DNA from: Iphione sp. A-MEVVRFRX5
Taxonomy: Eukaryota
DNA length: 64,000 nt
Assembly: GCA_976226885.1 (NCBI GenBank)
Contig: OZ320318.1
Location: forward strand, 81,964,001 to 82,028,000
Direction: 5' to 3'
The notes under the pieces are model-generated. The model saw only the letters and a program-made list of their open reading frames with translations, had not been told where the DNA came from and ran no database searches. This document shows, one piece after another, positions 14,536-51,942 of this stretch. A program made the position numbers and the translations under genes. Numbering within the stretch: the stretch's first letter is position 1; each line of letters opens with the position of its first letter.

Positions 14536-15222
14536 AGAATTGGTTCCATCCATTGTTACAGATCACTCGATTTTCAAAGATTAGAGAAACAACTTGAAAA
14601 GGCTGTTAGAATTGCTACAGGAAATACAAGAGACGACTTCCATAAAATTTGCAGAAAGCATAGTATCCTACCACTAGAACTTAGAAGTCACTATTATGCT
14701 TTATGTTTATATCAACCAATATTAATTGAACCGTTTTTGTATCTACACAGTAAAACAAGACTTAGACAAACCAACCTACCACTCCCTCTCCCTAAAAAAT
14801 CAAGTTTCACCAATGAACCAGAATATGTGGCAACAAGATTATGGAATAATCTACCAGACTCCATTAAAATCAATGATAAGAAAACATATAAGAACCTTGT
14901 CAAAGACTACTCGTTCAACAAATTATTGAAAGAAAACTGGAAAGTATCATGAAGTGTTATATCAACAATCGCTCACTAATTTTGTTTAATGTGCAATTCA
15001 TTATGTCTGACAATTATGTTTCGTTAACAACTTACTTTATGTAACTATGATATGGTACAAAAAGAAAAAGACCAACTATTGTGAATTGTATATATTGTAT
15101 ATATGTATATAGTGTAAATAGTGTATATAGTATTGTTCGTTTTGTCTCATGTAACAAGTCCTATGGCTGGCTACATTTGTAGCCAGGATAAATAAAAGTT
15201 CAAAAAAAAAAAAAAAAAAAAA
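14536..15222 (+). mobile_element. 5'-truncated LINE copy of a related but distinct family
   Basis: Frame to the stop at 14952 (DFQRLEKQLEKAVR...TRLWNNLPDSIK...YKNLVK) aligns with the C-terminus of the 51943 ORF (NFHRLSRLYNKAIR...KLWNNLPESI...FMRSVK). 3' hairpin 15167-15186, AATAAA 15191-15196, 21-nt poly(A) 15202-15222, candidate TSD GAAAAC at 14530-14535 and 15223-15228. Confidence 0.85.
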
Positions 15223-48429: not shown

Positions 48430-48545
48430 CACACAATTTATCTTATGAAAGGGGTTCTATCCTGGTGTGTCTTCTTCCCCTTTTTTCTGTGTCGCATGCA
48501 TACACAAAAACGATTTTCAGGAAATCCACTCAGCTTTTTAAGGGA
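48430..48545 (+). repeat. Diverged tandem unit, copy upstream of the LINE
   Basis: Similar to 55289-55411: GTTCTAYCCTGGT.TGTC...GCATGCA..CACA.AAA.GATTTTCA.G.AATCCACTCA.CTTTT. Confidence 0.85.
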
Positions 48546-48752
48546 CAAGATGGCGTAGCGCTTAAGACGTGTGGCGGTTAGGGAGCGGAGCATTATCCGA
48601 AGAAATAAGCAGTTGAAGCTTCCTAAGAGAATAAGGAAATAACCAACACCCGTGGGAATATCTGAGGAACGGCTTGGGCACCGTCATAAAGGAATAACTA
48701 CCGAAAGGAAAGGACACAGTGCGCTTAAACCAAGCCACCCACGGACCACGAC
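48546..48752 (+). promoter_or_regulatory. LINE 5' UTR with terminal YY1-type motif (candidate internal Pol II promoter)
   Basis: CAAGATGGCG at the first bases of the element. A 5'-terminal YY1 site is established for mammalian L1 internal promoters; function here is inferred. Confidence 0.6.
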
Positions 48753-50522
48753 ATGTCCCAGGAAGGCACGAGCAGGGTTACGCGGAGTGGGGACCCGAGC
48801 CAGGCCGGGATAACTAGGTCACAACGGTCGCAAATACAAACCGAGGACCTCGAAAAAGAAGGCAAATCTCGACAATCACACAAGGTAAACAAACTCCATT
48901 CACACTTGGGGCGTCGACTCTCTCTACCGAATGACTCTGTATGTGCTTTAACCTCGCTTATAACAGCAAAACCAGTCAGCTTTGCAGAAGGGCTAGCCAA
49001 AATCGCAAGGAGGGAGGAGCTGCTTGATATGGAAAATGAGAAAGGGCTAAAAACAGGCAGTCAAGACGCTAATGATGTAAATACCCAAACTACGATAGAA
49101 GAAGATATGGACACCAACGAGGATGGATTAGATGAGGACAGTGATGACTACACCACCGAGGAAGAAACACCAAAAAAGCCAATGAGGCCGAGACATCCCG
49201 GACGCAAGAAGCGCAAGGCGAATAGTCCATGCACAGAGGAGGACCTCTCCAATACTGAGCTTGGAGTTAATGCTGCCACTGGAGGAAATAACCCGCTCAC
49301 GCTAGAGGATGTACTGCAGACAGTTTTATCCCAAGGTGCGAAAACACGGCAGAGCATAAACAGAAAGTTCAGATCGCTTGAGAAAAAGGTGAGTGCAGCC
49401 GACCAAGACCGTAAGACGATTAAGAAAACAGCGACCGACACGCGAGCAAGGGTTGAATCACTTGAGACCAAGGTTAAAGCTCTTGAGGAAGAGAACGCGA
49501 AGCTACGAGCATTAATAGATGATGACAAACCAACCATTAATAACGAAAAAATAGCAAAACTCCAAAGAAGTGTGGACTCACTGCAACGCCACAGCAGACG
49601 GAAAAACATCTTCATTGATGGAATAGTGCATTCGGACGGAGAAGACTTGAAACAAAAAGTAATCGACTTAAGTGGAAAGATAGGTGTGAAACTAAAAAAA
49701 TCAGACTTATCTGAATGCAGACGCACAGGCAAGAAGGACAGTGAAGGGATCCCAGGAATATTTCTATCATTCAGAGATACAGAGAAGAAGGCCGAGGTAA
49801 TGAAAAAGAAAGGAAAACTGAAAGAGATAAAAGAAGCTGGGAAGATCTGGATAAATCATGACCAAACGGCAGAGGAACGAAAACACCAGGCAAACCTGCG
49901 CGCTGTGGCAAAACTAGCCAAAGAGCGTGACCTAAAAACCCAAATACGGGGTGATGCAATCCAAATCGAAGACCGAACCTATAAATATGACCAACTGTCG
50001 GAACTACCAAAGGAACTGTCGCTTCAAAAGACAAGAGAGCTAGTCAATGATGGACATCTATTTTTCTCTGGGGAAGAGCATGTTCTATCGAGTCTGTACA
50101 AGTGCAATCTCACTTGGAAAGGAAATTCATTTGTCTCCACTGAACAAGCATATCAATGGGCACGAGCCACCGACTCAGGCGACAATGAAGTAGCACGCGA
50201 GATCGTTGAATGCAAAACCGCTGCCGGGCTATGCCGACTCCAAAAAAAGATCAAGGAATCAAAACATTGGAAAGCCAAACAACAGTCAACTATGGAAGAG
50301 CTAACGTTACATAAGTTTACGCAAAACCCACTGGCGGGTGAGTCACTACTTGAGACCGGCGATCTAGTCCTGGTTGAAGCATCGAATGACTTGTTTTGGG
50401 GTGCCGGGGCCACCCTACGCTCAGACCGTATACAAAGCCGAACCTATGAAGGTAGCAACACATCTGGGCTAGTTCTAGAATCCACACGCTCGGAACTCAG
50501 AGAATTAGCCAAAATAGCCTAA
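48753..50522 (+). CDS. LINE ORF1p: disordered/acidic N-terminus with basic patch, coiled coil, L1-type RRM and CTD, C-terminal NADAR domain
   Basis: 589-aa ORF. RPRHPGRKKRK basic patch; heptad-like region about aa 195-280; RRKNIFIDG...SECRRTG...IFLSF...IWINHDQTAEER matches the L1-like ORF1 RRM/CTD pattern (Transposase_22-like); aa 434-585 carry NADAR motifs. Confidence 0.92.
   Translation: MSQEGTSRVTRSGDPSQAGITRSQRSQIQTEDLEKEGKSRQSHKVNKLHSHLGRRLSLPNDSVCALTSLITAKPVSFAEGLAKIARREELLDMENEKGLKTGSQDANDVNTQTTIEEDMDTNEDGLDEDSDDYTTEEETPKKPMRPRHPGRKKRKANSPCTEEDLSNTELGVNAATGGNNPLTLEDVLQTVLSQGAKTRQSINRKFRSLEKKVSAADQDRKTIKKTATDTRARVESLETKVKALEEENAKLRALIDDDKPTINNEKIAKLQRSVDSLQRHSRRKNIFIDGIVHSDGEDLKQKVIDLSGKIGVKLKKSDLSECRRTGKKDSEGIPGIFLSFRDTEKKAEVMKKKGKLKEIKEAGKIWINHDQTAEERKHQANLRAVAKLAKERDLKTQIRGDAIQIEDRTYKYDQLSELPKELSLQKTRELVNDGHLFFSGEEHVLSSLYKCNLTWKGNSFVSTEQAYQWARATDSGDNEVAREIVECKTAAGLCRLQKKIKESKHWKAKQQSTMEELTLHKFTQNPLAGESLLETGDLVLVEASNDLFWGAGATLRSDRIQSRTYEGSNTSGLVLESTRSELRELAKIA
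50052..50507 (+). other. NADAR (YbiA/DUF1768, PF08719) domain within ORF1p
   Basis: Motifs appear in the order recalled for E. coli YbiA: FF..LSSLY, STEQAYQWAR (cf. SEHYFQAQK), W, HKFTQN (cf. AKFEQH), LLETGDLVLVEASNDLFWGAG (cf. LLATAPAKLVEHTENDAYWGDG), GSNTSGLVLESTR (cf. GKNRLGYLLMELR). Comparison made from memory. Confidence 0.9.
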
Positions 50523-50535
50523 ATACCAAGCAAAC

Positions 50536-51183
50536 ATGGATAGTGACGTGGTTTACCTAGCAGACAGCAGAGGCAGATATTTGCGAGAGGCCCTCAATAT
50601 ATTAGGGGTGCCGGGCAGCGTACACTTCATTCCCGGAGGGAATTTCCGTACGCTCGTGGCATATGCACGCAGGCACCAACGGCAGCAGTCACCGTGGGCA
50701 ATAGTGATCCTAGCAGGAATAAACAACATAACAAGATTAGTCAAGCAAGATGGCAAAAGGTGGGTGATCCCGAGGTACACTAATGCCCAGAAGGGGAGAG
50801 AAGATCTGGAAAACGAAATACAAAGGACATACACTAACCTACGCAACCTGTACCCAGACTCAAGGATTATATTTGCGACTATATTCAGTATGCACCTGCT
50901 GAAATATAATTTCTGGCTGAATGGAGTAAGAAAGAACCCATCTGAGTACAAAGAATGCCAGACACTAGTAGAAACCCTTGTACGGGAAATGAACCACCTG
51001 ATAACTGTGCAGAACGCCGCCGTGGGTGAAGGCAATATCTGGTGTGCAAGAATCATCTACTCAAAACATCGAGGGAAGAGTAGATACCGATATGGGAAAT
51101 TGTACGACGGAATCCACCTCGGGAGGCAAGAAACGTTAGAACTCGGAGAGAAGATCGAAGCATGGTATGCCCACCATGCTTAG
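50536..51183 (+). CDS. Stand-alone SGNH/GDSL-type hydrolase (esterase) encoded by the LINE
   Basis: 215 aa. Block I YLADS11RG, block II PG34G, block III LAG61IN63N, block V D191GIH194L. ATG lies 13 nt after the ORF1 stop in strong Kozak context (AAACATGG). Confidence 0.87.
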   Translation: MDSDVVYLADSRGRYLREALNILGVPGSVHFIPGGNFRTLVAYARRHQRQQSPWAIVILAGINNITRLVKQDGKRWVIPRYTNAQKGREDLENEIQRTYTNLRNLYPDSRIIFATIFSMHLLKYNFWLNGVRKNPSEYKECQTLVETLVREMNHLITVQNAAVGEGNIWCARIIYSKHRGKSRYRYGKLYDGIHLGRQETLELGEKIEAWYAHHA

Positions 51184-51942
51184 GAATTGATAACAAGCCT
51201 CGTCGTGCCAGACTGAAGGACCGCTATGCCAGGGCCACGGACAACAACAACAAGAGCTACTGACATGTGCATCCACCTACGTGTGCAGGTGTGGGCGGCT
51301 GTCCCGCCTAGCATTGAGGTATAGTGGTGTAACATGTCATAGTTATTCTCGGAATGTGTGCGTCTAGGACCTGGGCTATCTGTCTGACCTACACGCGCGT
51401 TGCTGCTAATTCAATACACTGTGTCACATTGATACATGGGACATTACTCGACAATATGAACCAACACTGCAGTACCGCCGACCTGATGCAGATAAGTAAA
51501 GAACTATCTAACGCACTTATTTTTTGCTCCTCTATATGTCGTATAACATGCCATTGACCGCACGTAGTCATGTAAATCTCTTTCAGTGGTTTTTTGTTTG
51601 ACAGTCTAGTAAATACCTGCTTCTGTAGTCATCGTAATAACCGCGCCTACTATACCGACTAGAATGCAAACGCATGAGTTATCTACTGCAAGGAATTATG
51701 AATAGCTACTGAAATATCCTCCCGCTTAGCCAAAACCATTACTTACGCGAACGCCATCTAGGTCACGCATCGTGACTGCAGCATCGTATCCTAGGTGCTA
51801 CATAAATTGTAATTACATAAGTGGGATTTAATACTTGAATCTCACAACCTTACTGTGATATCTTATTTTGTGAATGTATATACTGTAAATAACACATTAC
51901 CAAACTGTATATACTGCACCGGTCTAAATACGAGACCATACC

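Follow-up and report, generated by a model that had tools for sequence, protein, structure and literature searches.

The genome of Iphione sp. A-MEVVRFRX5 (GenBank assembly GCA_976226885.1) contains a long interspersed nuclear element (LINE) whose first open reading frame (ORF1) encodes an L1-like RNA-binding protein with a NADAR domain at its C terminus. The element lies on the plus strand at approximately positions 48546 to 55272 of the window, the 64,000-nucleotide stretch of contig OZ320318.1 (forward-strand positions 81,964,001 to 82,028,000) that was analyzed here; all coordinates below are those of the window and, unless another contig is named, of that strand. The element is complete and has three cistrons, encoding the ORF1-NADAR protein, a predicted SGNH-fold esterase, and ORF2, which combines an apurinic endonuclease (APE) with a reverse transcriptase (RT). 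An earlier note on this DNA, made from its letters alone, had described an RNA-binding LINE ORF1 protein (ORF1p) joined to a NADAR domain in an intact element, and the open reading frames, profiles, and folds agree on that combination. The element is an intact single-copy member of a large, ancient three-ORF LINE group, and purifying selection has acted on its NADAR domain for as long as these LINEs have been diversifying.

A type II ORF1 protein ending in a NADAR domain

ORF1 (48753 to 50522; ORF and Pfam evidence) encodes 589 amino acids (aa) arranged as a variable N-terminal region, a coiled coil, an RNA recognition motif (RRM) followed by a C-terminal domain (CTD), and the NADAR domain. 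The last of these was recognized by the Pfam NADAR model PF08719 over aa 441 to 583 (E = 2.7e-24; 86.7 bits versus a cutoff of 35.1) and by NCBIfam TIGR02464, the YbiA-type riboflavin-intermediate N-glycosidase model, which was the best NCBIfam match (86.3 bits versus a cutoff of 73.7). Among solved structures, a profile of 14 sister ORF1s matched the NADAR protein of Phytophthora nicotianae (8BAU; E = 2.3e-10) and Escherichia coli YbiA (2B3W; E = 1.3e-7). An AlphaFold model of aa 272 to 589, computed from an alignment of 33 natural copies, had a mean predicted local distance difference test (pLDDT) score of 92.8, and its NADAR half superposed on 8BAU with a Z score of 20.2 and a root mean square deviation (rmsd) of 2.0 Å over 160 residues and on YbiA with a Z score of 17.6 over 150 aa. 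The domain that the earlier note had read at the end of ORF1 is thus borne out both by profiles scoring above their cutoffs and by a YbiA-like fold. Its C-terminal position stands as described, but its extent does not: in place of about 150 residues (aa 434 to 589), the fold spans approximately aa 424 to 589, or 166 aa (50022 to 50519). The domain shares its fold with 8BAU and YbiA and also shares their active site, except for a Lys-to-Arg change. Those proteins are free-standing and single-domain, whereas here NADAR is the C-terminal module of a 589-aa ribonucleoprotein (RNP) component, with 22 to 26% sequence identity to them.

The RRM and CTD (approximately aa 281 to 423; 49593 to 50021) were placed by the model, by structure superposition, and by Foldseek. 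This half superposed on human L1 ORF1p (2YKP) with a Z score of 11.1 and an rmsd of 2.8 over 140 residues, and Foldseek returned E values of 3e-5 to 5e-4 against 2YKO, 2YKP, and 2YKQ, with a probability of 1.0 for these three and for 2LDY. Upstream lies the coiled coil (approximately aa 171 to 280; 49263 to 49592), where the ORF1 family profile matched GCN4-type and other coiled coils at positions of about 190 to 275, N-terminal to the RRM, where Pfam gave weak bZIP-type matches, and where the model opens with a helix running into the RRM. Pfam Transposase_22 (PF02994) had no match in ORF1 at E ≤ 1, and the relationship to L1 is at the level of the fold only. The superpositions of the RRM-CTD and NADAR halves, together with the upstream coiled coil, identify ORF1 as a type II (L1-like) ORF1p with NADAR appended at its C terminus. 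It resembles human LINE-1 ORF1p (2YKO/2YKP) in its coiled coil-RRM-CTD order and in the placement of its gene 5' of an APE-RT ORF2 and differs from it in having the additional NADAR domain and a long N-terminal region with motifs of its own. Two such motifs, GRRxSLP, which resembles a basophilic kinase site, and KKRKANSP, which resembles a nuclear localization signal, stay unchanged across 14 diverged ORF1s; the acidic region around them (aa 1 to 170; 48753 to 49262) is otherwise variable. Type II ORF1 is documented in the L1, CR1, L2, and R1 clades, and NADAR is absent among the ORF1 modules cataloged in the same survey (PMC4120745).

Active-site residues of the NADAR domain

Residues were mapped through alignments to 8BAU and the residue roles described in PMC11543638. 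By this mapping, E43, K50, W89, E125, D130, and W133 of the Phytophthora protein correspond in the window copy to E464 (codon at 50142 to 50144), R471 (50163 to 50165), W506 (50268 to 50270), E542 (50376 to 50378), D546 (50388 to 50390), and W549 (50397 to 50399), so that the full active-site set is kept with a conservative Lys-to-Arg change at position 471. E43, K50, and E125 line the distal ribose in the Phytophthora NADAR (PMC11543638), and mutation of the E, D, and W residues abolishes the N-glycosidase activity of YbiA and impairs SNA-3 of Caenorhabditis elegans (PMC9303266). The de Souza-Aravind scheme defines the YbiA family by its Glu at the E125 position; here the window NADAR holds Glu (E542), as do the YbiA and Phytophthora types, and not the Asp of the DarTG1-type antitoxin (BC4488 family). 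Since the ADP-ribose-contacting and catalytic residues are all retained, the window NADAR is most likely an active N-glycosidic hydrolase.

The residues singled out in the earlier note (E464, E542, D546, W549-G550, G567-x-N569, and R579) are all present, and the deviations from YbiA that it listed, QAQK to QWAR (in which the Lys corresponds to Arg471) and NRLG..LM to NTSG..LE, can be seen in the alignments. Most of the named residues are also invariant or nearly so across the 33 intact sister ORF1s of this genome, in all of which W469, W506, D546, W549, and G550 are conserved. At position 464, 28 of the 33 have E and 3 have D; at position 471, R occurs in 22 and K in 4, with the remaining 7 carrying some other residue. 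E542 can be called a NADAR motif in this copy, but it is not invariant in the family, being E in 22 of the 33 and Y, Q, A, V, or L elsewhere. Among 94 public representatives with an RRM/CTD-NADAR arrangement, described below, the position of E464 is E in 92, the position of E542 is E in 91, and a basic residue occupies position 471 in 90 (K in 58 and R in 32); judged by these aligned residues, the enzyme-like state is the rule in the public sample and Arg is a common alternative to Lys.

The family in the Iphione genome and selection on its NADAR domain

A six-frame search of the 1.18-Gb genome for the NADAR domain yielded 4112 first-look candidates, of which 150 were scored. All 150 matched with E ≤ 1.2e-25 and were 33 to 68% identical to the window copy, and about 60 of them lay in open frames of 530 to 724 aa. 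NADAR was found in every related copy examined, and the fusion is therefore not a one-off chimera. All three ORFs were intact in 9 of the 20 elements that were examined in full, with lengths of 535 to 614 aa for ORF1, 214 to 226 aa for the esterase ORF, and 927 to 943 aa for ORF2. The window LINE itself is present as a singleton; no element in the assembly is closer to it than 69 to 70% DNA identity, and no near-identical truncated 3' ends of it were found there.

Synonymous sites are saturated between lineages (median proportion of synonymous differences [pS], 0.79 to 0.85), and too few pairs had a synonymous divergence (dS) below 1.5; constraint is therefore reported as the proportion of nonsynonymous differences (pN) set against pS rather than as a formal dN/dS ratio. 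The pN of the NADAR domain was 0.366, compared with 0.324 for the RRM/CTD, 0.376 for the esterase, 0.407 for ORF2, and 0.480 for the N-terminal region, and 18 NADAR columns were invariant in 33 lineages. On the point of selection across copies, which the earlier note had raised, the domain proves to be strongly constrained, and it has been held by purifying selection while the lineages diversified.

The genome also contains, at G000:C22:818011-830844, seven NADAR matches at an exact spacing of 2063 bp, in open frames of about 415 aa (one of 401 aa), a pattern suggestive of NADAR-containing units arranged in tandem; NADAR recurs in a comparable way, every 642 aa or so, in Haliotis rufescens XP_048255699 (P0001). 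No NADAR match was found in the 12 best protein-primed PolB loci of the genome (about 3.6 kb of each, partial coverage).

Relatives in public sequence collections and published systems

When 1.84 billion representative proteins were searched exhaustively with a profile, 26,335 matched at E ≤ 1e-3, 119 of them at E ≤ 1e-30. In 95 of the best 150 representatives, an RRM/CTD profile match lay directly upstream of NADAR, and another 30 of the 150 carried 2 to 7 tandem NADAR domains (7 in H. rufescens XP_048255699). Many domains of these tandem proteins (P0001 to P0020 and others) are without the catalytic residues, the full set being found in 11 of 57. Two Logan contigs (L051 and L053) had an ORF1-NADAR frame followed by an SGNH ORF (E of about 1e-25 against the esterase profile), with an APE-RT frame in one of them. 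At L053:423-2606 (P0018), ORF1 extends about 340 aa past NADAR in a low-complexity tail rich in Q, N, and P that had no Pfam match; an ORF1 tail beyond NADAR is a feature of some public relatives. Structural look-alike clusters in the ESM Atlas were eukaryotic, with Annelida as the sole recorded phylum (few members have a phylum recorded). The Atlas also holds NADAR folds fused to an mRNA cap guanine-N7 methyltransferase in giant viruses, to an RNA-dependent RNA polymerase (RdRP) in Pisuviricota, and to Macro and ADP-ribosylglycohydrolase domains in Bacillota. In a NADAR tree of 210 sequences (computed with FastTree only), the 33 copies from the Iphione genome formed one clade with a support of 99, and LINE-borne domains clustered together, separate from the multi-NADAR proteins. 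From this public spread and from the domain tree, the ORF1-NADAR fusion is judged to be old and to have diversified within host lineages.

In a full-text literature search, a single paper was found that links NADAR or YbiA to retrotransposons, a 2025 Genome Biology study of transposable elements in Ectocarpus (PMC12477816), which notes NADAR in LINE ORF1 proteins of the Pacific oyster in one sentence and a supplementary figure, does not characterize it, and proposes that NADAR processes the RNA intermediate. A NADAR-bearing ORF1p is therefore known as a kind, though uncharacterized; the earlier note was right that it knew of no characterized example, and the fusion is nonetheless not unreported. 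The oyster (Crassostrea gigas) elements, Repbase "Tx1" LINEs, likewise place a YbiA-family NADAR in a lophotrochozoan LINE ORF1. They are labeled Tx1 (L1 group), whereas the relatives of the window ORF2 carry Jockey-type names, a separation that comes from these descriptions, and PMC12477816 contains no analysis of their architecture, selection, or active site. The Ectocarpus Gypsy elements of the same study are also retrotransposons bearing a YbiA-like NADAR, but these are long terminal repeat elements in which the domain sits at the N terminus of Pol and not in an RNA-coating protein, and in which it was probably acquired independently from bacteria.

The esterase cistron, ORF2, and element boundaries

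The element has three ORFs rather than two, and a separate ORF of 215 aa (50536 to 51183) lies between ORF1 and ORF2. It begins 13 nt past the ORF1 stop codon in a different frame and contains the blocks DSRGR, PGG, GINN, and DGxH, with a weak match to Pfam GDSL_2. In 28 copies, all four SGNH catalytic blocks (I, II, III, and V) are conserved; D10, S11, G13, G34, G61, N63, and H194 are invariant, and D191 is kept in at least 90%. The model of this protein (pLDDT, 89.8) retrieved GDSL lipases, platelet-activating factor acetylhydrolase, and sialate esterases through Foldseek (E of about 1e-7 to 3e-8), and its top profile match in the PDB was 4C1B, an "ORF1-encoded protein" (E = 0.023). By its conserved blocks and modeled fold, the middle ORF is a predicted SGNH-fold esterase. 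The type IV LINE ORF1p esterase (4C1B) is likewise a LINE-carried SGNH-fold hydrolase with four catalytic blocks; there, the esterase is part of ORF1p, whereas here it is a separate second cistron past the ORF1 stop codon. A frameshift that split off the end of ORF1 was rejected as the origin of this ORF, since the stop and restart are kept in 26 of 30 loci, in which the esterase ORF (210 to 222 aa) starts −29 to +43 nt from the ORF1 stop, and since it occurs copy by copy in any of the three frames relative to ORF1.

A noncoding spacer of 759 nt (51184 to 51942) separates the esterase ORF from ORF2. A spacer is always present in the family, at 552 to 814 nt, its length being kept while its sequence diverges between lineages. 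ORF2 (51943 to 54750; 935 aa) matched Pfam APE endonuclease models over aa 11 to 217 (Exo_endo_phos_2 and Exo_endo_phos) and RVT_1 over aa 504 to 752 (E = 1.3e-38), in agreement with the family profile, and no zinc knuckle or Cys-rich C terminus was found in its 935 aa. The ORF2 family profile matched human L1 ORF2p with E = 2.7e-35 over the APE and RT regions, a match that does not discriminate between clades. The closest named relatives of the RT are cnidarian proteins named after the X-element and BS of Drosophila, which are of Jockey type. Because of these relatives and the short ORF2 that lacks a zinc knuckle, the element is filed as an APE-type LINE that probably belongs to the Jockey/CR1/L2 superfamily.

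The 5' untranslated region, read directly, is approximately 200 nt long (48546 to 48752), with a 5' edge that is uncertain by a few bases. The 3' untranslated region (54751 to 55272) contains AATAAA at 55245 to 55250 and ends in a 19-nt poly(A) tract at 55254 to 55272. The only possible target-site duplication is a short AAGGG. A 68-nt repeat flanks the element in two copies that are 79% identical (48484 to 48551 and 55356 to 55423), the first ending at the 5' boundary of the LINE and the second lying 84 nt beyond the poly(A) tract. Elsewhere in the window, a plus-strand fragment at 14560 to 14907 matches the last 118 or so residues of the ORF2 family profile (E = 5e-8) and is probably a 5'-truncated relative in the same LINE group.

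Possible functions of the ORF1p-NADAR protein

The reversal of guanine and cytosine ADP-ribosylation in DNA and RNA by NADAR proteins has been shown only recently. Each of the four NADAR families can take ADP-ribose off guanine N2 in DNA and RNA, and the YbiA-type and NADAR-type enzymes act on cytidine-ADP-ribose as well (PMC12945103); among eukaryotic examples, the Phytophthora NADAR removes guanine-ADP-ribose (PMC11543638). Type II ORF1p would trimerize and coat its own RNA in cis, and many NADAR domains per RNP could for that reason be carried to the site of target-primed reverse transcription. There, the most likely task of NADAR would be to remove base-linked ADP-ribose (on guanine N2 and possibly on cytosine) from the RNA, the nascent cDNA, or the nicked target DNA, and such removal could relieve a block to reverse transcription or integration in the way that phage NADARs act against DarT1. 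Taken as a whole, the idea that ORF1p-NADAR is an active base-ADP-ribose eraser delivered in the LINE RNP is a serious possibility that stops short of being probable, and a counterdefense role for the domain is plausible by analogy. In T4-like phages, an orphan NADAR neutralizes DarT1 (PMC11825919); these phage NADARs, as well as viral macrodomains, resemble the LINE domain in that a genetic parasite carries an ADP-ribose eraser. They differ in facing a known host writer (DarT1 or PARPs), and among these cases only the window LINE has its eraser fused to an RNP coat protein.

Several observations weigh against a role as a base-ADP-ribose eraser. The residue at the E542 position is nonacidic in 11 of the 33 intact sister ORF1s, with at least four independent losses on the ORF1 tree, and a well-supported clade of four elements (L041, L042, L045, and L047), three of which have both ORF1 and ORF2 intact, is noncanonical at two or three of the E464, R471, and E542 positions. 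Since intact elements of this clade are without the canonical residues, the guanine-de-ADP-ribosylation triad is dispensable in some lineages, a result compatible with a role in binding alone or with another chemistry, and even the window copy has Arg in place of the usual conserved Lys. Other NADARs have small-molecule substrates (YbiA) or a part in RNA splicing (SNA-3; PMC9303266). A host writer was sought in the genome with the Scabin-like (PF22596) and Enterotoxin_a (PF01375) profiles, which gave no match and thus no pierisin-, CARP-, Scabin-, or CT-type transferase, although the controls were silent with these profiles too. Neither an ADP-ribosyltransferase (ART) nor a neighboring DarT1 gene is encoded in the window element, as judged from its ORFs and Pfam matches. 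The genome does have one open frame for an R-S-E type ART (PF01129) and a cluster of PARP domains. To our knowledge, neither R-S-E ARTs nor PARPs make NADAR substrates, and the products known for them are removed by macrodomains, not by NADAR. The PARP matches, some 10 catalytic domains within 140 kb (G000:C4:4188061-4328866), several of them in very long open frames (up to 2281 aa), suggest a tandemly expanded, intron-poor gene cluster. Transferases of the CARP-1 type, which modify guanine, are found chiefly in bivalves, with others known from cnidarians, sponges, and other bilaterians (PMC12945103). The more specific proposal that the lophotrochozoan LINE NADAR is dedicated to erasing base ADP-ribose placed by a host nucleic acid ADP-ribosylation defense, with CARP-1- or pierisin-type enzymes as candidate writers, is distinctly unlikely.

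Variation at the catalytic positions would be accommodated if NADAR served mainly as a binding module that reads ADP-ribose, the ends of poly(ADP-ribose), or a related nucleotide, with catalysis dispensable, and thereby anchored the ORF1p RNP at DNA nicks through ADP-ribosylated chromatin or proteins. The residues that contact phosphate and ribose in 8BAU (W89, D130, and W133) have equivalents (W506, D546, and W549) that are invariant in all 33 intact copies, whereas there is variation at the catalytic positions (E542 and K/R471), several of which are noncanonical in some intact elements. PARP activity at L1 integration sites is also reported to aid retrotransposition. The catalytic set, on the other hand, is complete in the window copy and is kept in nearly the whole public sample (92, 90, and 91 of 94 representatives at the positions of E464, R471, and E542), a pattern expected of an enzyme, and a role in binding alone is rather improbable. 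An active N-glycosidase could instead have a substrate in RNA metabolism, such as a 5' cap derived from NAD or ADP-ribose, an ADP-ribose derivative from RNA repair or splicing, or a toxic nucleotide-like small molecule, and would then process or stabilize the LINE transcript rather than counter a defense. Contextual evidence first linked NADAR to RNA processing in which NAD is used or ADP-ribose derivatives are formed; SNA-3, which has three NADAR domains, is essential for trans-splicing in C. elegans (PMC9303266); and the fusions with giant-virus cap methyltransferases and RNA virus RdRPs, the RNA-intermediate processing proposed in PMC12477816, and the best NCBIfam match, which is to the YbiA small-molecule model, all point the same way. 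Such a substrate has been shown for no NADAR, however, and the removal of base-linked ADP-ribose is the only macromolecular activity demonstrated for the domain, so that a role in RNA metabolism is on balance also unlikely, about to the same degree as binding alone.

Of the explanations considered, the one that fits least well is that NADAR was acquired once from a host gene and has since persisted as a passenger without a function. Possible donors do exist in molluscs, such as the seven-NADAR protein of H. rufescens (XP_048255699), but NADAR has been kept in every lineage examined despite saturated synonymous divergence, its amino acid sequence is as constrained as those of the RRM/CTD and ORF2, with 18 invariant columns; the passenger explanation is accordingly very hard to credit.

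Whatever chemistry the NADAR of the window LINE performs, it adds an enzymatic module to a LINE ORF1 repertoire that includes PHD, CCHC, RRM, and esterase domains. It resides in an RNA-coating protein and has been kept by selection in dozens of deeply diverged LINE lineages and in many public assemblies, which implies that LINE replication intermediates may meet an N-glycosidic modification in vivo. A compact domain with a known assay and clear point mutants provides a testable entry point. The finding bears on the question of whether animals use nucleic acid ADP-ribosylation against transposons. Were the LINE domain a base-ADP-ribose eraser directed against such a defense, this would be the first writer-eraser arms race over base ADP-ribosylation between an animal genome and its transposons, and the repeated loss of the catalytic Glu would mark an escape from, or a change in, the conflict between host and LINE.

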